From assembly GCF_000143415.4 (NCBI RefSeq), contig NW_003314278.1:1432831-1496830 (forward strand): DNA of 64,000 nucleotides, in the 5' to 3' direction. Source of the stretch: Selaginella moellendorffii (taxonomy: Eukaryota; Plantae; Lycopodiophyta). This document shows positions 1-58,483 of the stretch, piece after piece (positions within the stretch are counted from its first letter, which is position 1; every line of letters starts with the position of its first letter). Made by a program: the position numbers and the translations under genes. The notes below the pieces were generated by a model. The model searched no databases. It had not been told where the DNA came from and worked only from the letters and a program-made list of their open reading frames with translations.

Positions 1-573
1 CATATCAGCCAGGCCATGGAGACTTTCTATGCCATGCCCGAGAGGGACGTTGTAAGCTGGACGATCATGTTGCAAGCCTTCGCTCAAAACGGAGATCTGG
101 CCCGAGCAAGCTTTCTCTTCGAGGCAATGCCGATGAAGAACTCTGTGTCCTGGACTGCGATGGTGCAAGGCTACGCTTGCAGTGGCTTTGCGGCGTCAGC
201 ACTGGAAGCCTGCTCGAGGATGAAGATGGACGGCGAGCAACCGAATGAAATGACTTTCCTTGGAGCTCTGGCTGCGTGTTGTTACCTGGGGCTGCTGGAT
301 CAAGGCTGGAAGAACTTTGTGTCGCTGAAGCAGGACTTTGGAGTGGCTGCGAGTGCTCAGCACTTCAACAGCATGGTTGATCTCCTGGGCCGAGCTGGCA
401 GGGTGGAGGAGGCCGAGAGTTTGCTCAAAACCATGCCGTTTGATCCCGACCATGCTACATGGACGAGCTTGTTGGATGCGCGTAGAAGCCAGCGCGATGA
501 GCTCGAGCCACTTATCTTTCTCCACGAAAGCCAGACTCCTCGTTGTAAACTGACAGTGCGAGAAAAAACTTAG
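1..573 (+). CDS. PLS-class pentatricopeptide repeat protein, 3' part (5' end lies outside the window); truncated E domain, no DYW
   Basis: Repeats MPERDVVSWTIML.., MPMKNSVSWTAMV.., PNEMTFLGALAAC, HFNSMVDLLGRAGRVEEAE..MPFDPD..TWTSLL; the frame is open back to base 1. Confidence 0.85.
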   Translation, partial: HISQAMETFYAMPERDVVSWTIMLQAFAQNGDLARASFLFEAMPMKNSVSWTAMVQGYACSGFAASALEACSRMKMDGEQPNEMTFLGALAACCYLGLLDQGWKNFVSLKQDFGVAASAQHFNSMVDLLGRAGRVEEAESLLKTMPFDPDHATWTSLLDARRSQRDELEPLIFLHESQTPRCKLTVREKT

Positions 574-12562: not shown

Positions 12563-13807
12563 ATGGCTGATTTTTTCCGGAGCCCAGAGTTTAGGCGGTG
12601 CTCGCAGCTCATCCGTTCGTGCCGAAGCCTGGCCGACGCGAGGAGACTCCACGAACAGGTAACCGGAGGGATCCAGCAGCGCTGCAAGAGCAGATTTCTT
12701 GCAAATCTCATCGTCGAGATGTATGGGCGATGCGGCAGCGCTGGCGACGCGCGGAGTGTCTACGATTCCATCGAGAAGCCAAACTTGTTCTCGACTCACA
12801 TCATGATCCACGCGTATGCCCAGAACGGGCATATGGATCTCGCCCGCCACCTCTTCCTCCAAATGCCCGCCCGGAACGATGTCTCGTGGAACACCATCGT
12901 CGCCGCAAGCGTTATCAACGGGCTTCTCTCGGAAGCGCGAACTATCCTGGACAAGATGCCCGAGCTCGGCCATGTTCCGTGCACTGCGGTGATGCGAGGT
13001 TTCGCCCAGGCGCTGGAGCTCGACCGAGCGATGGAAATCTTCCACCAGATGCTGCACCGCGACTTGGTGTCCTGGACGGTGCTGCTCGATGGCTACACCC
13101 AGACCGGGAATGTCAAGAAAGCCGTGGAGATCTTCGAGAGAATGCCCGAGAGAGATAGCATCTGCTGGACAGTCCTGTGCCAGGCCTATGCCGTCCTCGG
13201 CGATCTCATCCACGCCGAGGAACTCTTCCACCAAATACCCGAGAAGACACTGGTGTCCTGGACTGCGATCATCTACGCTTATGCCCAGAATGGGCATCCG
13301 ATGGAAGCTCTAGAGCTCTTCTGGGGCATGGATCTCGAGGGTGTGGAACCCGACGAGATTACTTTCATTGGAGTCCTCACCGCTTGCAGCCATGCCGGGC
13401 GCGTAGAGCAAGCATGGGACTACTTCAACTCGTTGCCTGATGATCGCGGCCTTGCGCAGCTACCGGAGCACTACCACTGTGTGATCGACGCGCTGGGACG
13501 ATCCGGACAGCTTAGCGAGGCCCAAAAGTTTGTGAGGGAGCTCCCGCGCAAGGAACTGGCCGTGGCGTGGACATCGCTGCTGGATGCCTGCAGGGTCCAT
13601 GGCGATGTGGAGCGAGGGGCCGTGGCCGCCAAGCAGCTCATCGACATGGAACAGGATCCCGAGGCCCGGAAAACAGCGCCTTATCTTTTGCTGTCCAACA
13701 TCTATGCTGCTGCTCAGAGGCCTGAGGATGTGATCCGGATCCGGCAAGCCATGAAGGCTGATTGTCTGAGGAGCAATAGAACTGGGCTTAGTCGATTGGA
13801 ACATTGA
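12563..13807 (+). CDS. PLS-E class PPR protein (414 aa, intronless), probable organellar RNA-editing factor
   Basis: Tandem P/L/S repeats; PDEITFIGVLTACSHAG, HYHCVIDALGRSG, AWTSLLDACRVHGD, PYLLLSNIYA; no DYW. Confidence 0.92.
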   Translation: MADFFRSPEFRRCSQLIRSCRSLADARRLHEQVTGGIQQRCKSRFLANLIVEMYGRCGSAGDARSVYDSIEKPNLFSTHIMIHAYAQNGHMDLARHLFLQMPARNDVSWNTIVAASVINGLLSEARTILDKMPELGHVPCTAVMRGFAQALELDRAMEIFHQMLHRDLVSWTVLLDGYTQTGNVKKAVEIFERMPERDSICWTVLCQAYAVLGDLIHAEELFHQIPEKTLVSWTAIIYAYAQNGHPMEALELFWGMDLEGVEPDEITFIGVLTACSHAGRVEQAWDYFNSLPDDRGLAQLPEHYHCVIDALGRSGQLSEAQKFVRELPRKELAVAWTSLLDACRVHGDVERGAVAAKQLIDMEQDPEARKTAPYLLLSNIYAAAQRPEDVIRIRQAMKADCLRSNRTGLSRLEH

Positions 13808-27128: not shown

Positions 27129-28841
27129 TCATAAGAGCGCCTCCACTTGTCTCTGCGCGTACGCTTTGAGGAGCAGCAAATGCGGTGCGCTGCTCGCTGC
27201 CGTGCCAAGTTTGTCCGCTGCTCGGGTGGCAACATCGAGGTCCGAGTGAACTCTCGAAGTTCCAAGCAGAATCGTCCACGCAACGTCGTCCGGCACGAAA
27301 GGCATGGTATGGACGAGCTCCTCGGCCTCTTCCAGTCTCCCGGCTCGGCCCAGGATATCCAGGATGCAGTGGTAGTGCTTGAGAGCCGGCAGTATTCCGT
27401 GGTCTTGGATCATCGACAGGAACCGGCTCCTTCCTTCCTCGGGCCGACCGACGTAGCTGCAAGCCGTGAGAACTCCCAGGAATGTGACGTCGTCGGGCGG
27501 TATACCATCGCAGTTCATGGCCTTGAAGATCTCCAGCGCCTCCTGCCATGCAGCGGTGTGCGCACAGCCGACGAGGAGTGTCGTCCATGCGACTGTGTTC
27601 TCTGCCGGCATTCTCACAAAGTTTGTCCTTGCCTGTTCTAGATTCCCTGTCTGAGCATATGCTCCCACCATGCACGTAGAGCTAAAGACATTGTGCTCGG
27701 GCATCTTTGCGTAGACGCTCTCCAACTTGTCAAGATGCCCATTCTGGGCATAGGCCATCAGCAAGAGATTCCAGGGCAGGATATCCCGCGTTTGCATCCC
27801 GTCAAACAAGCCCTTTGCGGCGCTGACTTTTGTTGACTGTGCGTGAGCGGTCAATGCCGCCGTCAAAGATATGACGCATCTCTGCGGCATCTTTAAGAGG
27901 ATTAGATCTACCTCGTGGAGATTCCCTTGTCGGGCATATGCCGATAACAGGCTGGTCCATAGTACCGAATCTCTCTGCGGGAAGTCAATAAAACTCTTCC
28001 TGGCAGCGTTCGTATGACCGTTTTGGGCGTATGCATCGAAGATGGAGGCGTATGTACAAACGTCCCATGCCGGCATCTTTTCATATAGGAATATAGCGCA
28101 GTCCAGATTCCCGGTTGCGGCATATCCCGCGATCACATTGTTGCTAGTGACGAGGTCTCTCTCCGGCATGCTTTGAAATAATTCGCTGGCTTCATCCATT
28201 TTCCTGTGCTGCACAAACACAGCGATCATCGCCCCCCACGAAACAATGCTCCAAAGCGGCATCGCATCAAACATCTGCTTTGATTCATCCAAATGCCCCT
28301 GCTGGGCATTTGCTTGAAACATGATAGTCCACACCCAAACATCTCTTTCCGGCATCTCGGCAAAGAGGGCGCTGGCTCGACCGAGTTCCCCGGATCTCTG
28401 GAGCGCTGCCAGCACAGTGGTGAAAGATATAACGTTCCTTGACGGCATTCTCTCGAAGAAAAGCATCGAAGCATCCAAGTGCCGGCTGTGGGTGAGTGAC
28501 TGCAGCATCGCGGTCCACGACACGATCCACCGCGCGGGCATTCGATCGAAGACGTGCTTGGCCTCGGCGTGATGCCCATTGCGAGCGTAAGCGTGGAAGA
28601 GGATGCCCCAGGAGAACTTGTCTGGATTGGCGATCCCATCAAACACTGACTGCGCTGCTTCCACTCTCCCGCATTGGACGTATGCCTCGATGAGGTGATT
28701 GCCTAGGAGCCCATTGCTGCGGTGCTCGCTCTCCACGATCCATTTGTGGAGTTTCTTGCACTTGGTAGCATCCCTGGATCGAGAGGCGGCTTTCAAGGCT
28801 TGGACGTAGTCTGCTACTGTTACCAAAGCTCTATCTCTCAT
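27129..28841 (-). CDS. PLS-class PPR protein (570 aa, intronless), short E domain, no DYW
   Basis: Long run of S-type repeats (MPERD.., MPAWD..), PDDVTFLGVLTACS, HYHCILDILGRAGRLEEAE. Confidence 0.92.
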   Translation of the reverse strand: MRDRALVTVADYVQALKAASRSRDATKCKKLHKWIVESEHRSNGLLGNHLIEAYVQCGRVEAAQSVFDGIANPDKFSWGILFHAYARNGHHAEAKHVFDRMPARWIVSWTAMLQSLTHSRHLDASMLFFERMPSRNVISFTTVLAALQRSGELGRASALFAEMPERDVWVWTIMFQANAQQGHLDESKQMFDAMPLWSIVSWGAMIAVFVQHRKMDEASELFQSMPERDLVTSNNVIAGYAATGNLDCAIFLYEKMPAWDVCTYASIFDAYAQNGHTNAARKSFIDFPQRDSVLWTSLLSAYARQGNLHEVDLILLKMPQRCVISLTAALTAHAQSTKVSAAKGLFDGMQTRDILPWNLLLMAYAQNGHLDKLESVYAKMPEHNVFSSTCMVGAYAQTGNLEQARTNFVRMPAENTVAWTTLLVGCAHTAAWQEALEIFKAMNCDGIPPDDVTFLGVLTACSYVGRPEEGRSRFLSMIQDHGILPALKHYHCILDILGRAGRLEEAEELVHTMPFVPDDVAWTILLGTSRVHSDLDVATRAADKLGTAASSAPHLLLLKAYAQRQVEALL

Positions 28842-44035: not shown

Positions 44036-45640
44036 TTGGACAACAAAAGAACCAAAGAGCATGCATCCAAATCTTTGGCACAACAACAGCATCAACTTCT
44101 CAAACAAGATCAAGATCAAGACCAAGCTCAAGCTCCAGCTCAAGCTCAAGATCTCCTGGAAGATCACACTCATGCTTCCCAGGAGGAGCAGCATCTCAAG
44201 CAAGAGCAGCAAGACACTTCCAAGTCCAAGTCTGGTGGTGGCGAGGAGGCATCCTTTGGTATGTGGCAAGCCGCTTCATGTCTCATACCATCTCAGGGGC
44301 AGCAAGAGAAGAGTTCCAAGCTCCAAAGATCATCCACAGGTAACCATAGCAAGGCTCGCAACTTAGCAGCAGCTTTGGATGGATCGGGTGATCCCGAGTG
44401 CTCGCAAGGCATGGCTGAGTTCGTAGCGAGCATGGCGACGGTCAAGAACTGGGTGAACGCAAGCCTCAAGCCCAAGGACAAGGAGGCCATCTCAAGCGCG
44501 TCAAGGTCATGCAGCTTTTGCGGACTCAAGGGCCATTCGGTCATGGATTGCTCCGAGACGCTCGAGTGCGAACTTAAAGAGCTGGAGAGGCGAGCGCTCA
44601 TTCTCGAGGACATGAGTAGCGAGGTCCTTGACTTCCCTTGCTTGAGGTGCTTGGGGATGGACACTTGGGAGCTCAGTGTCGATTCTCGGTCACCGAGGTG
44701 GCGTCTCGAGCTCGAGAGAACAGTGAGATGAGGAACTGGAGATTCATGAGGAGGAACTCTAGCAACGTCTCAAGCCATCCGTGACCAGCGTAACAGTACC
44801 TGCGAATCCAAGTCTTGTGCTCGTGGATCACGCAAAAGCTATTCCCGCTGCCAGCATTCCTCCGGTTGTATGGACTCAAAGCACCAGCCTCGTTCCACAA
44901 TCGGGTAACTTGTCTATAGCTCTGCTTCACGAGCCCGATCACAAGGTTGCGAGAGCCAAAGATCAAAGAAAGAACGAGGAGAGTCCCAAGGGCAACACTC
45001 ACAAGAAAGTTGGCCTCCAAAGGACTGGAACTCCGGCTAAGAAAGCAGCAGCTCCGCAAACCAGTGAAACACTTCCCAGCGTTCCCAAAGACATGCTTGC
45101 TGCTATCGAGTCCGTGAGGCTGTCAAGGTCCGAGCTATGGAGGTAGTGCTGTCTCTCAAACACGTCTATGTCTTGCTTTCTAACATAGATCTCTCGGGTG
45201 TAGATGGATGGATTCTCCAGACTTCAACACAAATGTGCGAGGGTTCTTCTTGCGGCTAAGGTTTGGAAGATGGGAGAAAGATCTTGGTGGAACCGGCTAC
45301 AGGATGGCACGAATACGAGGTACTAAAGCTCTCGCAACGTTTCACCGAAGTTTGTAAAGGTCTCCCCAAATAAACAGGAGCCATCCGGAAGCTAGGTGGT
45401 GACGACAAGAACATGTCCGTCTCCGTGGATCTTGGAGACATGGAGTGCACAGTGGACAGTCAGTACGTCTCGAATCACTCCTTCACAGAGGTAAGAGAAA
45501 GTTCCATGGATGGATCGATCGATAAGCTTGGTCTCTAGGCGGAGCTTGTGGAATGGTGGAGGGGACGATGGAAGGCTGGCAAGCGACTCATCCCCGAGGC
45601 CGAGCTACAGGCGAAGCTCGCGCAGCATCACAACTGGTAG
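44036..45640 (+). pseudogene. Unknown, probably disrupted gene with Q-rich region and CCHC zinc knuckle
   Basis: CSFCGLKGHSVMDC (CX2CX4HX4C); further exon-like segments with GT-AG introns at ~45143-45203 and ~45492-45538; internal stops. Confidence 0.45.
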
Positions 45641-45672
45641 GATTTTGTATAGCGCTTATATAAATCTTCCAA

Positions 45673-47379
45673 AGGATCGAGTTTAGTCTAGATTTTGGAA
45701 CAACTTGCGCTGGTTTTGGTTCTCTTCATTGACTGGCCTGGCAAGACCCTCTTCTATGTTCCAGGGGAGCAAGGATCTTTCAAGCTTGTGGATTGTGCTT
45801 TGTAGCGGCTTCGAAGGGTGGCTTGGCTCAAAGAAGACCTCACTCCCCCTGCACAGGAGGAGATCGAGCAAAAGGTTAGTGTGTTTGAGACGGGTTCCAA
45901 GCTGCTGCGCCGAAGAAGGAAGCGAGGAGGAGGAGAGGCTGGTCGTGGATTACGTGAGATCTATTTTCCAATTTATCATCCACCATCTGCAGTGGACGTG
46001 CAGTGGTGTCTTACAGTCCCGGCGATTTGGAGCGACCAGGCCAAGGGCAGCATGCAAGTCTATGCTGAGAGGGCCAATCGTGGTGCCAAGAACGATACAG
46101 TGTCGGAGAGGGAGGCCGTCACACGCACCTTCGTTCCTCTAAACAAGAGCGATATCATCATGGGCATTAGCTTGCTCGGCTCCAGCAAGTCGCGGGTAAG
46201 TTTTGCAGCGTCCCCGATGCGAGCATCTATCCCCTGAGGATCATCCTGGAGCCGGAGGCAGCTTCTTTTTCGTGCCATAGGCAGCTCCGAGGTGTTCTCG
46301 AGAAGTTCCTAGTGGCGGATGTCGGTGGAATCATTGATATCATCGTGCATGAGAAGGAGAGCGCGCAGGATTGGATCATTCACAAGGTCCATGAAGCTTG
46401 TGCTAGCTCCGGTGCACTTGGAGGTGGGACTTACGTCGACTCCAACTTTCTGGAGTTTCTCAGGAAGAAGATCGGCTGCTTCGACACTTTCAAGCAGCAG
46501 GAGCCGGATGTGGTGCACAGGATCTTGAGCTGGTGGCTCGGACCCAAGGGCAAGTGCACGTTCGACGGAAGCGGCTCCAAGTTTTTGGAAATCCCTGCAA
46601 AGTTGTCCAAGGCATGGAAGAAGCACGACAAGGCGGAGCTGGGATTCCCAGAGAGCAGTGACTACTACGACGAGATCGAGATCAGGTGTGAGCAGATGAA
46701 GGCGATCTTTGACACCGAAGCCGACAAGACCATCAAGCTGATCGACGAGAAACTTCGCAAAGTTGACAACGTCAAGTACATCCTTCTGGTGGGAGGCTTC
46801 TCCGAGAGTCGCTACCTGTTCAACAGGATCAGGTTCGAAGACTTGGTCTCGCCCCCGAATCCCGGTTCCGCAGTGTGCCGGGGCGCAGTGGCTCTTGGAG
46901 TTGGAACAGGCGTGGTTCTCTCCAGGATCTCCAAAAACTCTTTATGGCATTGCGACGAGTCGCTATGCACGGTAGGACGATCCACCAGCATCCAAGTCTA
47001 TCGACAACTATGGAATCGAGAGATGCAGCGTCTTTAGCCTCTACGTCAAGAAGGACGAGTCAGTCTCGGAGAACCAGGAGATCACGCACTCGTTCTTTCC
47101 CATATACACTGACCAGAAAGCCTTGAGGATCGACTTACTCATCTCGAGCAGCAGCAATATTCCAGAGTACACGATCGACAAAGGATGCTCGACAGCTACA
47201 GCATGGACATAAATGAGGATCTAGAGCTGGGGACGAGTCGCCAGGTGGCCGTGACAATGTACTTTGGACGGAGCAACATCGAGGTGTCTGCACAGCGCGT
47301 CAACTTTGGGATGAACCGTGGGCTTGAGAGGCTCTACTCGGTGGAATTTGATGCGGCTCAAACTTATGTCAACAAGTAG
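45673..47379 (+). pseudogene. HSPA12-like atypical Hsp70/actin-fold ATPase, frameshifted
   Basis: LDFGTTCAGF, WCLTVPAIWSDQAKGSM, ILEPEAAS, FLVADVGG, GGTYVDSNF, ILLVGGFSESRYL, AVCRGAV; reading frame broken several times. Confidence 0.78.
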
Positions 47380-47499
47380 AGTCTAGCGAGTGTCAAGTTC
47401 TTCTCCGTGTTTTTTGTCTTAGTAGAAAGATCTGACTAAACCTAAGGCCATATCCCGAGAATATCGAGCGTACCTCGAGCATAGGGTTTTGTTTAAGCT

Positions 47500-49215
47500 A
47501 GCTAGTTATGGCTTCTGCAATCTCCTTTACCGTGCATAGCTCCGATCCACAGGATGTCCATCTTTTCACCGACTAGCCTGGAGCTCATACTACGGTGATG
47601 TGGCATACTCGAGTGTGGCAACGTGGGGAGCAAGCGAGGCTATCTGGTCAGTAGCCAGTGAGTACAGTGTGCCCCACATTGTGGGCAAGAGTGGATTTGC
47701 AACGTAAGACAGTTACAAGTCCAACTAGAACCTGAACTCATACTCCAAGAGCTGTGTAGGAAGTACTAGGAACAAAAGTTTCTATTCCTTCAACAATTCA
47801 GCCAAGACTTCAACTAATAGCAAAACCCCTTGCCCACAATGTAGTCACACTTCAAATAGCCTCATTTTCTCTGCACATCACCACACTTGAATACACCACA
47901 TCACCACATCAACTCTATACTGTGTTCCATCTCTGGCTCACACTAAGCTCCACTATTTTCCTCTCGCTTCCCCTTCTTTCGAATATTCTCTGGAATCTGA
48001 AGACTTCATTAGAACAACAAAAAAAATGCAAACTTTTATCACCAAGAAGGCTGAGCTTATGAGAGGTAACTTTTGTGAACTGTTTACCCTCCGAGGATCA
48101 TCTTGGAGCTGGAGGTGACGTCATTCTACTGTGGTAGTGTCTCCCTTTCTCGAGGGGACAAGTTCTTGGTGGCGGACATTGAACTATTGATATTGTTGTG
48201 CACAAGAAGGAGAATTGCATCACCCACAGGGTCCATGAGGCTCGTGCTAGCTCCGGAGCACTTGGAGGTGGTACTTACGTCGACTCTAACTTTCTGGAGT
48301 TTCTCACCAAGAAGATTGGATGCTTCAACACTTTCAAGCAGCAGGAACCGGATGTGGTCCACAGGATCCTGAGCTGGTGGCTCGGACCCAAGGGCAAGTG
48401 CACGTTTGTCCAAATTCATGAAAGTTCCACCAAAGCTGCCGAAGGCATGGAAAGAGCATGACAGGGAGTTTGATACAGGAAACTGGGATTTGCTCCAGAG
48501 AGATGATGAGTGCTACCATGAGATTGAGATTGACTGCGAGGAGATGTGCGCAATCTTTGACACAGAAATCAACAAAACCATCCAGCTAATCGAGGAGAAT
48601 TTTGACAAAGTTGACGGTATCAAGTACATATATCTGGTTGGAGGCTTCTCCGAGAGTCCGTACGTGGTGAAAAGGATCAAGGTGCAATTCGAAGAAGCAG
48701 TGGAAGCTGTGCATTGTCCTTTTAATCCCACCGCTGCGATCTGCCGAGGTGCCGTGGCTCTCGGCACTGGAACAGGCGTTGTGCTCTCGAGAATCTCCAG
48801 AAAGTCTTACGGTATCTCCACAAGCCATATCTTTCGCTGGGACGTCGATCCACCAGAGTACAAGTTCTTGGACTTCTTTGAGATCGAGAGGTATCAAAAT
48901 GTTTTCTTCAAGGTGTTTGTCAAGAAGGACGAGCCAGTGACGGAGGATCAGTTGGTAACGCACTCGTTCTTCCCGGTATATAGGCGATAGAGATTACTTG
49001 TTCAGCTACACCACCTAAACAGGTTGTGAGAAGCTCAATCACTATAGCTTCGACATTGACGAGGATCTACATCTCGACACTGACCCCGAGGTGGCCGTGA
49101 CAATTTTCTCTGGGAGGAGCAGCATTGAAGTGTCTGCCCGGCGCATCAACTTTGGGAGTAACTGCGAGTCGAGAGGCTCAATTGGACGCTTCTCAAAAGT
49201 ATGTCAACAAGTAAA
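47500..49215 (+). pseudogene. Second tandem HSPA12-like copy, more degraded
   Basis: 48090-49215 is colinear with 46230-47379 (GGTYVDSNFLEFL, LVGGFSESPY, AICRGAVALG, SRISRKSYG). Confidence 0.78.
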
Positions 49216-49573
49216 CAAGGTTTATACGGTACTACATTCCGAATACACATCTGATTTAACATTAAAACAGACCATTGTACACCTTTGGTCACGTAAAAGA
49301 AGTAGCTGGCCTGTCAAGGTTCGCCGGCGTGATTCGTCGGTCAGATCGTTCGTCATGTTCAGCTATTCACGTCGCGTGCTTGGTCGAAATCAAAAGATTC
49401 GCAATGTTTTCTAAGATAGATTGGTATTGATTCTGTCCACAAGCCGCCATGATCTACAGAATGATTGCTGAACCAAAATGCACATAGACAGCTGGACGGA
49501 CATGGCACGTCATATAATAACCCCATCAAACATGCATATGTAAGAAGTTCCAGATTCCTCCTCCCACAGCATC

Positions 49574-51668
49574 ATGTCTAGTGTGCAGGATCTTGAGTTG
49601 CAGCAGCAGCCAAGTGATAATCTTAGCGACCAAAGTGACTCTAATGCTCCCCATGAATCTTCTTCTTCTTCTTCTTCTCCGTCCAGTTCTCCTTCATCAT
49701 CCACTTCTTTGTCAGCCGCTCCTCAAGCATCTCCATGGGGAAAGCTAATCTGGCACACAATCATTTGCCTCCTTGTCTCAGCACACATGGCTACATTTGT
49801 GAATTACCTCGGTTACAGGTTCTATGTCTACTCCAAGCATCCCGGCGAGTTTGTGAGAAGGCCGTGGCTGATAATTCTGACGATCTGCGAGGTGATATAC
49901 TTTCTGAATAGCGTTATTGGAGCTGTGGATCTGGTGTTACCACCTCGAATATGGAGGCCCCGTCAGAGTTTGTCGTTGAATTGGGAAGATCTTCCGACGG
50001 TTGACATATTTCTTCCCTGCTGCAAAGAGCCCACTGACGTTCCAGAGGATTCGATTCAGGCTGCCCTGGCTATGGATTATCCCAAGCACCAGTTTCGAGT
50101 TTTGGTCCTGGATGATGGAGGGGACGATCAGCTGAAACAATACTGTGAGGTATTGGAGCATGTCGAGCCTCCGAGTGCTTCGGTCCGATATCTTCGTCGA
50201 GTAAAGGTCAGCTTTTAACTTTTCTAACAGTTCTTTTTACATGACCATTTGTTACAGATTCCAGGAGTTCCACACAACTTCAAATGCGGTAACCTTAACT
50301 ACGGCCTGGAGCATTCGGACGCAGAGTTCGTGGTGATGATGGACGCAGACATGATACTTCACCCATCGTTCCTGAAGACTTTACTTCCTCATATCGTGAA
50401 AGACCCCAAAGTGTCATTCGTACAGATACCTCAGTCGTTTTACAACCTTCCGGTGGGAGATCCTCTAAACGATGCTTGCGGATTTTGCTACGAGCGTCTC
50501 ATGATTCACAGGGACACATTTGGGGCCGCACCGTGCGTTGGAACTGGAGCAATCTTCCGAAGGAAACATCTGGACGAGATTGGAGGCTTCCAGCCAATGT
50601 CAATCACAGAAGACACCACGACCGCATTCAAGCTCTTCAACCAGGGCTTCAAGTCCGTCTACCTCAACCGCAACCTTCAGGTCTGCTGTTGCTCAAAACA
50701 CGGTGACTTTTGTTGACTCCACCTTTGATTGTTAGATTGGTCTTATACCGTGGACGTTTGAAGGATATATCAAGCAGCGGCAGCGGTGGTGCCAGGGAGC
50801 TATACAACAATTCTCTGCGACATGGAGAGAGATGCTTGGGCCAAAGAGCAAACTCTCCTTGGTTCTCAAAGTGAGTTTCTTCTGGCACACGGGATACTAC
50901 TTCATCGCAATCGTCAACCTTGTTATGCTTCTCCTCTTCATCGTTTGTCTTGCACTTCACTTGGACCTCATGATCGGCACCTCCCATGAGGCGTGGCGTG
51001 TTATCATACAGCTCGCCATCTTCCTCATTTTCTGGCGCCTTTCTTGGATGTCAGTCTGGCTCAGTCTTCCACAATCCATCCGGAGTCGTAACCGGGACGA
51101 GTCACATTTCTGGTGGATGACACCCTTCTTCCTCCAAACCATATATAAGTCCATCTTTTCGTACTCTTCCACTTTCACATTCACTCCAACAAGCAGCATC
51201 GATCGAGTTGCAGCACAGGCCAAGCTCACCAAGCAGCCAGCCTTGATCAAAATTTTCCTTGTCAAGCTCAAACATGTAAAGGTTCACATCATCTATATAC
51301 TCCTGGTCTTGGCAGTGGTGGCCTACAGAATTTCCTGGGTAGCGAAGCAAAGAGGCCGAAATTGCAGCCATGATTTTTACGTGATCGCAATGTCCTTCTT
51401 TCTTCTTTCAACTTGGACACACATGCTTGTACCAATTGTGTACATTTTGTGTCCGCCCAGCTACAAGCCTGGGCAGCGCAAGGGGCTGCTTCACTACAGG
51501 GAAAAGGTTCCACATTTCGTGGAGGGAGACCATCTCCCAAAGTGGCACTGGTCAGCCATGTTTTACGAGGCCATAGCTAACGTGGTTGTGGTGATTTTCT
51601 GGGTGGCAGCACTTGTTATTGCTGTCACTAAGGCAGTTTGCCAATGGTGTAAAACTGGTGCTATATAA
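49574..51668 (+). CDS. Processive GT2 glucan synthase of bacterial BcsA/fungal type, 662 aa; exons 49574-50206, 50258-50680, 50736-51668
   Basis: VDIFLPCCKEP, VLDDG, HNFKCGNLN, DAD, VQIPQSF, CVGTGAIFRR, SITED, QRQRW; 2 N-terminal and several C-terminal hydrophobic segments; both introns are phase 0 GT-AG. Confidence 0.9.
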
Positions 51669-52079
51669 AAGCTTACATAAAGTCTTGTTTAAAGGAATGC
51701 GCCAGTGGACTTTTGTCACGCCATCTGCTAGCACAGGTACTTTTACTACGTCCAGCCTGATGTTGCCTGGACAAGCTGTACCACACCATCAAACGTATGA
51801 AAGACGATGGCACGATGTATAACGTTCAGGGCTTTCTGCTCATCAGCATGATGAGCATGAAGGACTTGTTTGAGGGGCGATTTGGTGATGGACAATTGTG
51901 TGCTATCCAAGACTATCAGCTGTCATTCTGGTTGGAAGACTTGCTTCGACAGGTTAACTACAAGGCTTAATGTCCGGATATAATAAAAGTCTACTTGGCA
52001 TTTTTCACTTGGGACGCTATTAATTATTTAGACATAAACCTTGACAGCATACATCTCCACAACTTCAACACATTCAACT

Positions 52080-55000
52080 TGGTTGGGTGAATACTAATTC
52101 AAGGTGGTGTCAAATTAAATTTTTAACTTCATCCTTGGTATAGATTGGTTACAATGTAATCATGCCAAATGTGACTTTAAAGCTTATCCCTTTTGTTTCA
52201 TACTTTTTTATATTTCATTCATTCCTTTCACTTCTATACTTTTTCATCCCTTTACTTCTACCTTTGCTTTTATTACTTTTATCTCTCTATTGTTTCCTTC
52301 TATGTTTCTATCTTATTCCGCTCTTTTCTTTTTGGATCCCTTTGACGGTCTTTGTGTTGTAGTGGTTGACTGGCTTATGAAGGAGTATGCCAATCTCTTT
52401 AAATTTGACCTATCGTCTAGGGCCAAGATTGCCACACGTTATCCAATTTCAACTGGGGATGCTTGTCCAATCAAGGTTTTTATTCATCGTCGGTCACCCA
52501 AAGAGATCAATATTTTACATGCAAACATTTTAAAAAGGGTGTTATTCAAAAGTCGTGAAGTCTTTGGGCATGTGAACCTTATCTTCTGATGAAGCCTGAT
52601 AAAAGTATTTGCCTTTGCATTTACTATCATTCATTAAATGAAGTGACAATCCCAAATGCATACCCTCTTCCTCACATTGTTAATTGCTTGGATCGTTTGG
52701 GGAGAAGTCATTGGTTCATCAAGTTCGATTTTGCTTTTGGGTACTAACAAATACTAATAGCCGAAGAAGAAATTCCTAAGACTACTTTTTATACACCATT
52801 TGGTTTGTACAAGTTCTTTGTGATGCCATTTAGTTGAAACAATGCTTTAGCAACTTTCCAGTGGATGATGGACAAGGTTCTTTGTGATATGCCGAAGGTA
52901 ATTACTGACTTTATTGATGAGTCTTGATTCAATTGGAAGGGATCTGGGAAGAACATGTCTATAATATTCGTAAAGTGTTATATTGGTTTAAAATTGAAGT
53001 AGTCAAAGTGTGTGTTTGGGTCCAAGAACATGATTTATCTTGGATACCATATTTCTCATGAGGGTTTGCAAGTTGATTCTGACAAACTTGTGGTTGTTTT
53101 AAAGTTTCTTACTTTAAAGTGTGTGAATAATGTGCAATGCTTTCTAGGCAAAATGCAATATTTTAGTCATTTTATAAATCATTTTTTTGATTGCATTGCA
53201 CCATTGCAAGCTTTGCTAACGTCATCAATATCATCTTTTATTCGGTTTACAGATTGGAGCGGGCATTCATGGATCTCAAAGAGTTATTGACAACCCCTTT
53301 AGATTTGGCATATCCTAACTACACTCAACCTTTCATTTTGCACGTGGATATTTTTGATATTGGTTTTAGAGGTGTGTTGATGAAAGAGAGCTCAAGTGTT
53401 CCTGGTCAGTGCCATCCTATTACATACATCAGCTGTACATTACAACTAATGGACGTGAACTACTCCACAATAGAGAAGAAGTGTTTAGTAGCAATTTAGG
53501 GTTTCAAGAAACTTCATGCATATCTATATGATTCTCGAATGTTACTAAAAGGTGATCATGCTGCCGTTACTTCATTATTGAAGAGGAAGAACTTAGTTGA
53601 TCGTATTGGTTGGTGGGTTTTGAAACTTCAGATATATGATTTTGATGTTATTCATTACTCGGGAAATTTTATAACTGATGTTAATGCCTTTTCTTGAGCT
53701 TTTCTTCTTTGCTCTCTTCTCATGTTTCTGACAAGCCTATTGTTCCAGCATCTATATCTTTTCTAGACGAGGATTTTTTGCTCTTGATGGTTTCTATACT
53801 TGACGTTCAGTATCCACAAAGTGTAGAGCAAGATTTACTTTCTTTTGTTGAGGTTTTCAAGGCTCAAAAGATTGAGCTATGGATTCAAAAGTTTCGAGAT
53901 GGGTTTGAGAATCCTGTATAATAACCTGTCATTTTAACATTTAAATTCTCAATATCACCTTGAAGACAACTTTCTTTATTTTGTAGGAACAGATCTTAAT
54001 GATCATTTATGGATAGTGGTGCCTTCAATCTTTATTTTACGATTTTTCCATGCCTACCATGATTCTCTTATTCTAAGTGGGCATATAGAATATCATCATA
54101 TGACTGAGAATCTACATAAGTCTTTTTATTGGCCGGAGATGCAACGTGATGTTATTTAGTATGTGCGTAGTTGTGTTTAGTGCCAAACTTATAACACTCC
54201 CCCTCATGCTACAGAAGGACAGTTGGAGTCAATTGTAATTTCCCGTTCATTTAAGTTGGTGGTGTTTGATCTAATGGGACCTTTTCCATGATTAACTATT
54301 GGCAATGAGTATGTTATTATTGCTTCTGACTACTTGACTTACTGAGTGAAAGTTGGTGCTCTTACTAGTGCCTTTGCAATTGCTGTTAGATACTTCCTTT
54401 TCAATCGAATAGTGTTCTAGCATTTTTATCCAAACTAGATTCTTTTGGATAATGGTCCCATATTTATAGTTGAGGCATTTCATGTTTTGACATCTTGGTT
54501 GGGGATACTTTCACAAGTGTTTATCATCCACAGTTAAATGATTTAATGAAATAGCTCATTTGGACCTTCAAAAAGATGATTGCAAAGTACGTAAACTTTC
54601 AACATTCGGAATGGATGGTTATTTGCCATCTGTTCAGTATGCATATGTCATAGGGGTGTAGAGTTCTATTGGTGCTTCACCATATAAACTCCTATATGGT
54701 TATGATCCAATATTATCAACGGAGTTGGGTTTACTTTTGTGATTGCCATGAGCTGCTGATGCTAAGTTATGGGATTAATATTTGACAAGCATTTTTTCAC
54801 TTGTCTGAGCAAAGTCTGCTAAACATCTAGGTCATGTATAAGTGGGACACCAACAATGGTACAACTCCCATTATCATCCACCTGTGGAGTACAAAGTGGA
54901 TTATTTGGTGTTAGTCTATTTTTCCCATCTTACAGTATGTGATTTATTTAAAAAGCTCTTTGCTCAGTGGAAAGGACTGTATCGGGTGTTGTGGCAAGTT

Positions 55001-58033: not shown

Positions 58034-58483
58034 NNNNNNNNNNNNNNNNNNNNNNNNNNNNNNNNNNNNNNNNNNNNNNNNNNNNNNNNNNNNNNNNNNN
58101 NNNNNNNNNNNNNNNNNNNNNNNNNNNNNNNNNNNNNNNNNNNNNNNNNNNNNNNNNNNNNNNNNNNNNNNNNNNNNNNNNNNNNNNNNNNNNNNNNNNN
58201 NNNNNNNNNNNNNNNNNNNNNNNNNNNNNNNNNNNNNNNNNNNNNNNNNNNNNNNNNNNNNNNNNNNNNNNNNNNNNNNNNNNNNNNNNNNNNNNNNNNN
58301 NNNNNNNNNNNNNNNNNNNNNNNNNNNNNNNNNNNNNNNNNNNNNNNNNNNNNNNNNNNNNNNNNNNNNNNNNNNNNNNNNNNNNNNNNNNNNNNNNNNN
58401 NNNNNNNNNNNNNNNNNNNNNNNNNNNNNNNNNNNNNNNNNNNNNNNNNNNNNNNNNNNNNNNNNNNNNNNNNNNNNNNNNNN
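58034..58483. other. Assembly gap (N run)
   Basis: Ns. Confidence 1.

Follow-up and report, generated by a model that had tools for sequence, protein, structure and literature searches.

The window analysed here, a 64,000-nucleotide stretch of Selaginella moellendorffii DNA, carries on its forward strand, at 49574-51668, a gene with a single open frame of 662 amino acids (Table 1). Positions 49000-52300 were read and every GT-AG combination was tried, and one GT-AG model only was obtained, consisting of three exons, all in phase 0, with introns of 51 and 55 nt. Its translation matches, at all 662/662 residues (100% identity), the S. moellendorffii entry EFJ27254.1 (UniProt D8RKK5; P0186 in our set), whose database title is 'glycosyltransferase, CAZy family GT2 [Selaginella moellendorffii]'; the scaffold is 2.45 Mb long. 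Annotation of the gene dates back to the first S. moellendorffii genome release. A preliminary description of this DNA had proposed just such a three-exon, 662-aa frame, with a DDG, DAD, TED and QRQRW set and with KCG replacing KAG, and it was borne out by the exhaustive splice modelling, the identity to EFJ27254.1 and the motifs seen in the translation.

Table 1. Features of the GT2 gene, in window positions
Feature	Position	Strand	Residues	Content	Evidence
Exon 1	49574-50206	+	1-211	Start of GT-A domain; DDG	AF2 model; RNA contigs
DDG	50111-50119	+	180-182
Intron 1	50207-50257	+		51 nt, GT..AG; sole frame-preserving splice	RNA contigs, runs X1 and X6
Exon 2	50258-50680	+	212-352	Catalytic core: KCG, DAD, TED	Pfam GT2; BcsA and motif alignments
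KCG	50282-50290	+	220-222
DAD	50342-50350	+	240-242
Chimera crossover zone (approximate)	50372-50680	+	~250-352		Segment identities; sliding CDS identity
TED	50606-50614	+	328-330
Intron 2	50681-50735	+		55 nt, GT..AG	Joint in RNA contig, run X6
Exon 3	50736-51668	+	353-662 and stop	QRQRW interface helix; five C-terminal transmembrane helices; F-T-P-T-S-S	AF2 model; motif alignment; exact-match RNA contig 50821-51119
QRQRW	50775-50789	+	366-370
F-T-P-T-S-S	51180-51197	+		Gating-loop-like; lacks the Lys of FxVTxK

Predicted fold and mechanism

Exon 2 on its own matches the Pfam GT2 core (PF13641, 4.5e-19) and, among PDB entries, bacterial BcsA (2.5e-18). With the whole protein, Pfam returned GT2 core families only (PF13641 at 1.3e-28, PF13632 and PF00535) plus a weak Cellulose_synt match; neither a zinc finger nor PilZ was among the families listed at E <= 0.1. 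Alignment to BcsA shows the same motif spacing, with no large insertions, and the catalytic motif columns, which align to BcsA as well, are invariant in 52 family members. These two comparisons agree with the earlier view of a compact, BcsA-like protein lacking the zinc-binding domain, P-CR, CSR and PilZ. The hallmarks of plant CESA (an N-terminal RING-type zinc-binding domain and the P-CR and CSR insertions) are missing, and so are those of bacterial BcsA, namely a C-terminal PilZ domain and a BcsB partner; the C-terminus is a transmembrane helix, and neither a second GT2 gene nor a Bcs-type (BcsB) neighbour was found within the window. What the protein does possess is the D, D, D, QxxRW signature of processive GT2 enzymes, set in a GT-A domain.

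An AlphaFold2 (AF2) model made from a 52-sequence alignment (pLDDT 84.4, pTM 0.84) lays the protein out as a disordered Ser-rich tail (residues 1-50), N-terminal transmembrane helices at 54-88 and 97-121, a GT-A domain at about 140-355, a helix at 360-386 carrying QRQRW and then five long C-terminal helices, with a loop of low confidence at 495-520. In the model a GT-A domain is fused to a transmembrane channel with a QxxRW interface helix, the arrangement of processive GT2 enzymes, and Foldseek aligned it to BcsA at TM 0.61 over about 580 columns. The counterpart of the gating-loop motif FxVTxK is F501-T-P-T504-S-S506, of which the family keeps the F and the T, not the Lys.

BcsA was the best PDB match by Foldseek (E 1.4e-24), followed by soybean and cotton CESA at ~1e-14 and CslF6 at 1.4e-11. 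Among Swiss-Prot models BcsA again ranked highest, at ~1e-23 with 19-22% identity and an rmsd of about 4 A across some 560 residues, and the CslC and CslA proteins of Arabidopsis and rice scored 1e-18 to 1e-20 at 17-19% identity. By sequence, the search of solved structures gave 7.6e-39 for BcsA and 2.7e-07 or worse for plant CESA; CslF6 was absent from it at E <= 0.01.

From these motifs and the model, the enzyme is predicted to be a beta-glycan synthase embedded in the membrane, processive and inverting, with the architecture of BcsA. In the cytosolic GT-A domain, DDG and DAD would bind the UDP-sugar and the Asp of TED would act as catalytic base, while QRQRW on the interface helix would grip the acceptor end of the chain. 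The polymer would then be pushed out through the enzyme's own channel, a putative bundle of about seven transmembrane helices. Control by c-di-GMP through PilZ is unlikely because there is no PilZ domain.

Family membership and the likely product

A full HMMER scan with exon 2 returned 11 cluster representatives at <= 1e-30, from ferns, one liverwort, S. moellendorffii, charophytes and Allomyces. Plant relatives include the liverworts Calypogeia and Riccia, the mosses Physcomitrium, Ceratodon and Sphagnum, the lycophytes Selaginella and Diphasiastrum and the ferns Ceratopteris and Adiantum, and the range of the family also takes in charophytes and many ascomycetes; seed plants were not found among the best 120 of 226 matches. 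We computed a maximum likelihood tree with IQ-TREE (59 rows, 639 columns, LG+C20 by PMSF), from a sample that leaves out CESA, CslA and CslC and in which Zygnematophyceae CslO could not be identified. A land-plant clade of liverworts, mosses, lycophytes and ferns, supported at 100/99, holds both the window protein and P0190 (LOC112289633), the only family member found in Physcomitrium patens, which is 51% identical to it over 596 residues. The Tft1-clade protein of Aspergillus fumigatus in our sample, P0273, is 29% identical over 495 residues. It is very probably Tft1 itself, since A. fumigatus has a single such protein according to the Tft1 paper (PMC4344333), although the accession XP_748682 did not appear among those cluster members that were listed. 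The ascomycete sequences sit on a very long branch.

These results place the gene in the AGlcS/Tft1-type GT2 family of non-seed streptophytes, since named CslO. The preliminary description had suspected a group absent from seed plants and close to moss AGlcS and Aspergillus Tft1, and had called for a GT2 phylogeny. The tree supplies the grouping with the P. patens member and leaves the Tft1-type proteins more distant; the separation from CESA and CSL proteins comes instead from identity scores. Identity to CESA, CslA/CslC and CslF6 is 14-19%, with E-values weaker than those for BcsA (19-22%), and on these values and published trees (PMC3342304, PMC9915684) the protein is placed outside CESA/CslA/CslC, so that the nesting within an ordinary CSL clade which would have spoken against the proposal does not appear.

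Within the land-plant clade, one subclade (97/92) unites the Selaginella genes with liverworts and ferns, and another (97/95) the moss enzyme with other mosses and Diphasiastrum. By this topology the Selaginella genes are co-orthologues at best of moss AGlcS, not strict one-to-one orthologues, and because of this the product should not be taken for granted. According to Harholt 2012 (PMC3342304), P. patens has a single gene of this kind, named by Feng 2023 as Pp3c12_24670 (AGlcS) within the family CslO (PMC9915684).

Neither the gene, nor the family, nor the hypothesis that it makes the mixed-linkage glucan (MLG) of Selaginella is new; all three are already published. S. moellendorffii contains MLG in spite of lacking CslF/H (PMC3342304), and the same work, Harholt 2012, described Selaginella 'GT2A' genes that grouped with cyanobacterial and red-algal CESAs. 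Moss AGlcS makes an arabinoglucan, and homologues in lycophytes and ferns have been noted (Roberts 2018 as reported in PMC6482432 and PMC7997180); in A. fumigatus, MLG depends on Tft1 (PMC4344333). The family has since been proposed for Selaginella MLG (Chang 2023, PMC10374906; bioRxiv 10.1101/2024.08.27.609851), the preprint extending the proposal to ferns. For the making of MLG in Selaginella with no CslF/H/J, this GT2 family is the leading published candidate.

Going by the relatives of the enzyme, we lean slightly towards a product that is a linear (1,4)-beta-glucan broken by 1,3 links, either MLG or a moss-type arabinoglucan, with some other polymer as a lesser possibility. An older reading has the enzyme as a 'linear-complex' cellulose synthase making plain beta-1,4-glucan, unrelated to Selaginella MLG. 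In its favour, every one of the nearest matches among solved and reviewed structures is a bacterial cellulose synthase; it also accords with the grouping of Harholt 2012 with cyanobacterial and red-algal CESAs (PMC3342304) and with the term 'linear CesAs' used for such genes in the 2024 fern preprint (bioRxiv 10.1101/2024.08.27.609851). We nevertheless consider a plain glucan unlikely, as both characterised members of the closer family lead to mixed polymers, arabinoglucan for AGlcS and MLG for Tft1 (PMC7997180, PMC4344333), and identity is 51% to the moss protein and 29% to Tft1 against 20-22% to BcsA.

On the plant side, the only characterised member makes arabinoglucan, not MLG, and sits in a different subclade from the Selaginella genes.

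A chimeric gene at a duplicated locus

The gene is a natural chimera, its 5' half of GT2A1/GT2A3 type (A-type) and its 3' half of GT2A2/GT2A6 type (B-type). Sliding identity along the CDS is 90-97% to an A-type gene over the first ~750 nt and 97-98% to a B-type gene from ~900 nt on, where A and B differ from each other by 15-33%. The protein segments behave likewise: residues 1-250 are 96-99% identical to GT2A3, and residues 353-662 are 94-98% identical to GT2A2/GT2A6 but only 61-83% to A-type proteins. Upstream, the flank at 44970-49227 shows about 93% identity with sequence flanking the GT2A1-GT2A2 tandem pair on GL377689.1, where two genes stand in place of the window's one; tblastn finds a single copy within the window and no tandem partner. 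Such a chimera is what one would expect from unequal crossing-over or gene conversion within a duplicated tandem GT2A locus. A gene described as 'GT2A5/6, a fusion between two genes' appears in Harholt 2012 and is tabled there as XP_002971505 (PMC3342304), the only GT2A accession in that table far from the others. The window gene is probably this GT2A5/6, on the basis of its chimeric structure and the accession range rather than of a sequence match.

Transcription was followed in assembled RNA contigs, which are not quantitative and whose unspliced pieces could include DNA carry-over. Contigs of two studies carry both predicted joints as GT..AG skips, the 51-nt skip in runs X1 and X6 and the 55-nt skip in run X6. 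One spliced contig joins a 50080-50204 piece to exon 2 with zero differences, and another exact match, at 50821-51119, crosses position 50850. It is at this position that contigs of high depth (300-550) leave the window sequence, from which they differ by 2-3%; their overhang translates to LSFLLKV, present in the A-type paralogue P0172 and not in the window gene. The exact-match contigs have a depth of about 9-12, 30-50 times shallower. The window copy thus appears to be transcribed and correctly spliced but weakly expressed, and is possibly a minor contributor.

dN/dS against paralogues is 0.18-0.23 for the whole gene and, when each half is compared with its nearest partner, 0.19 and 0.32, at dS of 0.06-0.15. 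Since dN/dS is 0.18-0.32, the gene is under purifying selection. The surroundings are decayed, with two frame-broken Hsp70-like copies upstream and broken reverse-transcriptase/RNase H pieces downstream. The earlier picture of a gene kept by selection inside a block of transposable elements and pseudogenes therefore holds in both respects, and the assembled RNA contigs confirmed both introns.

It could be argued that the window copy is a young recombinant by-product of the GT2A arrays with little function, the real work being done by GT2A1/2/3/6. Its A-type/B-type structure at a duplicated locus would fit, as would its shallow exact-match contigs beside the far deeper paralogue-derived ones and the decay of its neighbourhood. 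We think this quite improbable: the combination of dS 0.06-0.15 with dN/dS 0.19-0.32 means that substitutions have gathered under constraint since the recombination, no catalytic residue and neither splice site has been lost, and a spliced RNA contig with zero differences exists. For expression tests, GT2A1/GT2A3-type copies are probably better first choices than a window copy that is chimeric and seemingly weakly expressed.

That the gene is an ordinary member of the CslA/CslC/CESA superfamily, or a contaminant of the assembly from a fungus or bacterium, can be dismissed as having next to no chance of being correct: CslA and CslC are likewise about as long and have no zinc finger, P-CR or CSR, and the family has fungal relatives, but the protein is 51% identical to the moss AGlcS-type protein and 17-19% to the CslC/CslA of Arabidopsis and rice, the introns are short, plant-like, GT-AG and spliced in Selaginella RNA, PPR genes and plant retroelements flank the gene on its contig, and a 93%-identical flank and paralogues lie elsewhere in the same genome. 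That the window as a whole comes from a fungus or another non-plant source is ruled out by the identity to the S. moellendorffii entry, together with those PPR genes and retroelements. The locus is a real, intact, transcribed nuclear gene of S. moellendorffii, and we put at roughly 0.85 the probability that its identity, family and enzyme class, as distinct from its product, are as set out above.

Virus-like relatives and known systems

The nearest relatives outside plants are nine metagenomic GT2 proteins (P0006, P0208-P0215), 37-40% identical to the Selaginella protein and sister to the land-plant clade in our tree (100/98). Their contigs, among them ERZ22147080 ctg80210l, ERR4193243_8535 and Ga0453725_0001682, are gene-dense, intron-free and rich in ORFans. 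One of 752 kb holds mostly ORFan genes along with TnpB-like, collagen-like, photolyase, RPE65 and rhodopsin genes. On another, the GT2 gene is separated by 4 kb from a family-B DNA polymerase that bears an intein, and adjoins an Rpb1-type RNA polymerase split into three ORFs with inteins; relatives of that DNA polymerase are all metagenomic, some of them on contigs of 0.4-0.7 Mb. Three contigs have a DUF2721 gene in common as a conserved neighbour. From this gene content we infer that the contigs come from giant-virus-like (Nucleocytoviricota-like) genomes. No capsid gene was seen on them, Pfam gave nothing useful for ten neighbouring ORFs, IMG/VR scans with a single virus-like GT2 protein and with an alignment found nothing, and BFVD held no close viral homologue, its best match being at 18% identity.

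An AU test, with groups named after the tree had been seen, rejected a union of land plants and sampled charophytes to the exclusion of the virus-like proteins (p = 0.0004) and did not reject one of land plants with ascomycetes (p = 0.06). That the land-plant AGlcS/CslO family shares its most recent ancestry with giant viruses, and not with fungi or the sampled charophytes, is offered as a tentative and somewhat doubtful possibility. Such a history could have run in either direction near the origin of land plants, by transfer from virus to plant or by viral capture of an early streptophyte gene. The KCG motif is common to every land-plant member examined, whereas the virus-like proteins have KAG, and because of this difference a recent viral capture from a crown land plant seems unlikely. 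The Ala-to-Cys change marking the land-plant members may also have a role in sugar choice. If true, giant-virus ancestry would revise the suggestion of Feng 2023 that CslO was transferred from fungi (PMC9915684), and a confirmed giant-virus sister group would bear on how early land plants got wall-building enzymes. Beyond the literature our additions are modest, consisting of the chimera structure, the KCG signature and the virus-like sister group.

Among known systems, P. patens AGlcS, which we take to be P0190, is alike in length, domain order and all catalytic motifs, including KCG. It differs in belonging to the other land-plant subclade, and in being a single gene in its genome where Selaginella has several paralogues, the window copy among them being chimeric. 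The ascomycete MLG synthases, Aspergillus fumigatus Tft1 and A. nidulans CelA, also combine a D,D,D,QxxRW core with about seven transmembrane helices and lack both PilZ and zinc finger, but these ascomycete proteins have KAG, ACPPQ for the VQxPQ box, AED for TED and a longer N-terminus; Tft1 has been placed as the fungal sister group of CslO (Feng 2023, PMC9915684). BcsA (PDB 4HG6/4P00/5EJ1, 9B8V) is the best match among solved structures in both sequence and fold and is alike in motif spacing, in the QxxRW interface helix and in the channel-forming helices, whereas the Selaginella protein lacks PilZ and the gating-loop Lys and is only about 21% identical. With grass CslF6 (PDB 8DQK), itself a producer of MLG, the GT2 fold and the catalytic motifs are common, at a fold E of 1.4e-11 and 14% identity, and CESA compares at a fold E of 1e-14 and 15% (14-16%) identity; unlike either, the Selaginella protein is without P-CR/CSR-type insertions. 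If it does make MLG, the origin of that activity would be separate from that of the grass enzymes.

Mosaic structure of the gene and its surroundings

Comparison of the window gene (49574-51668) with both members of the tandem GT2A1-GT2A2 locus (L002:5317-7395 and L002:8001-10066) shows that it is a mosaic of two paralogue types, the 5' half being of the GT2A1/GT2A3 type and the 3' half of the GT2A2/GT2A6 type, with the crossover in exon 2. The upstream flanks of the two loci are about 93% identical, and downstream, similarity to the paralogous loci stops at about 51695 (L002) and 51963 (L003). Pieces of a Ty3/gypsy-like element begin about 600 nt past the stop codon. Directly upstream lie two tandem Hsp70-like copies, which appear to be pseudogenes and which also occur at the GT2A1-GT2A2 locus (L002:1-4866); in the protein atlas this HSPA12-like type is associated mainly with ascomycetes, Mucoromycota and molluscs. 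Elsewhere in the window are two long ORFs with PPR repeats, one carrying an E motif; PPR proteins form a large gene family in plants.

RNA run X1 yielded a high-depth contig at 50356-50850 in which intron 2 is unspliced. Compared with the window it lacks 10 nt at 50677 and shows nine differences; it most likely stems from an A-type (GT2A1/GT2A3) paralogue whose intron was retained, or from DNA carry-over.

Features of the window and virus-like GT2 relatives
Feature	Location	Strand	Remark
HSPA12-like gene, divergent, two frame-broken copies	window 45705-47126, 48103-49230	+	
Reverse-transcriptase and RNase H pieces, broken	window 52290-53499	+	PF17919 at 5e-16
Long PPR-repeat ORF	window 12563-13807	+	
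Long PPR-repeat ORF	window 27129-28841	-	
Assembly gap	window 58034-58483		450 N
Virus-like GT2	L004:10001-11818		
Virus-like GT2	L005:10001-11839		= L008:16168-18006
Virus-like GT2	L007:4175-6088		

Relatives outside plants

Outside plants, the proteins nearest to the land-plant AGlcS/CslO clade are encoded on metagenome contigs (37-40% identity); in our tree they are sister to it (support 100/98). By gene content these contigs are giant-virus-like, with split, intein-bearing Rpb1 and PolB genes, numerous ORFans and a DUF2721 gene as conserved neighbour; a 752-kb contig among them has genes for TnpB, a rhodopsin, RPE65 and a photolyase.

The KCG motif

The preliminary description singled out KCG in place of KAG. 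The motif is present (50282-50290, residues 220-222) but is not peculiar to this gene. All virus-like, charophyte, Allomyces, ascomycete and E. coli sequences compared have Ala, whereas Cys occurs in 13/13 land-plant members inspected, spanning liverworts, mosses, lycophytes and ferns, the moss AGlcS-type protein sharing it with the window protein.
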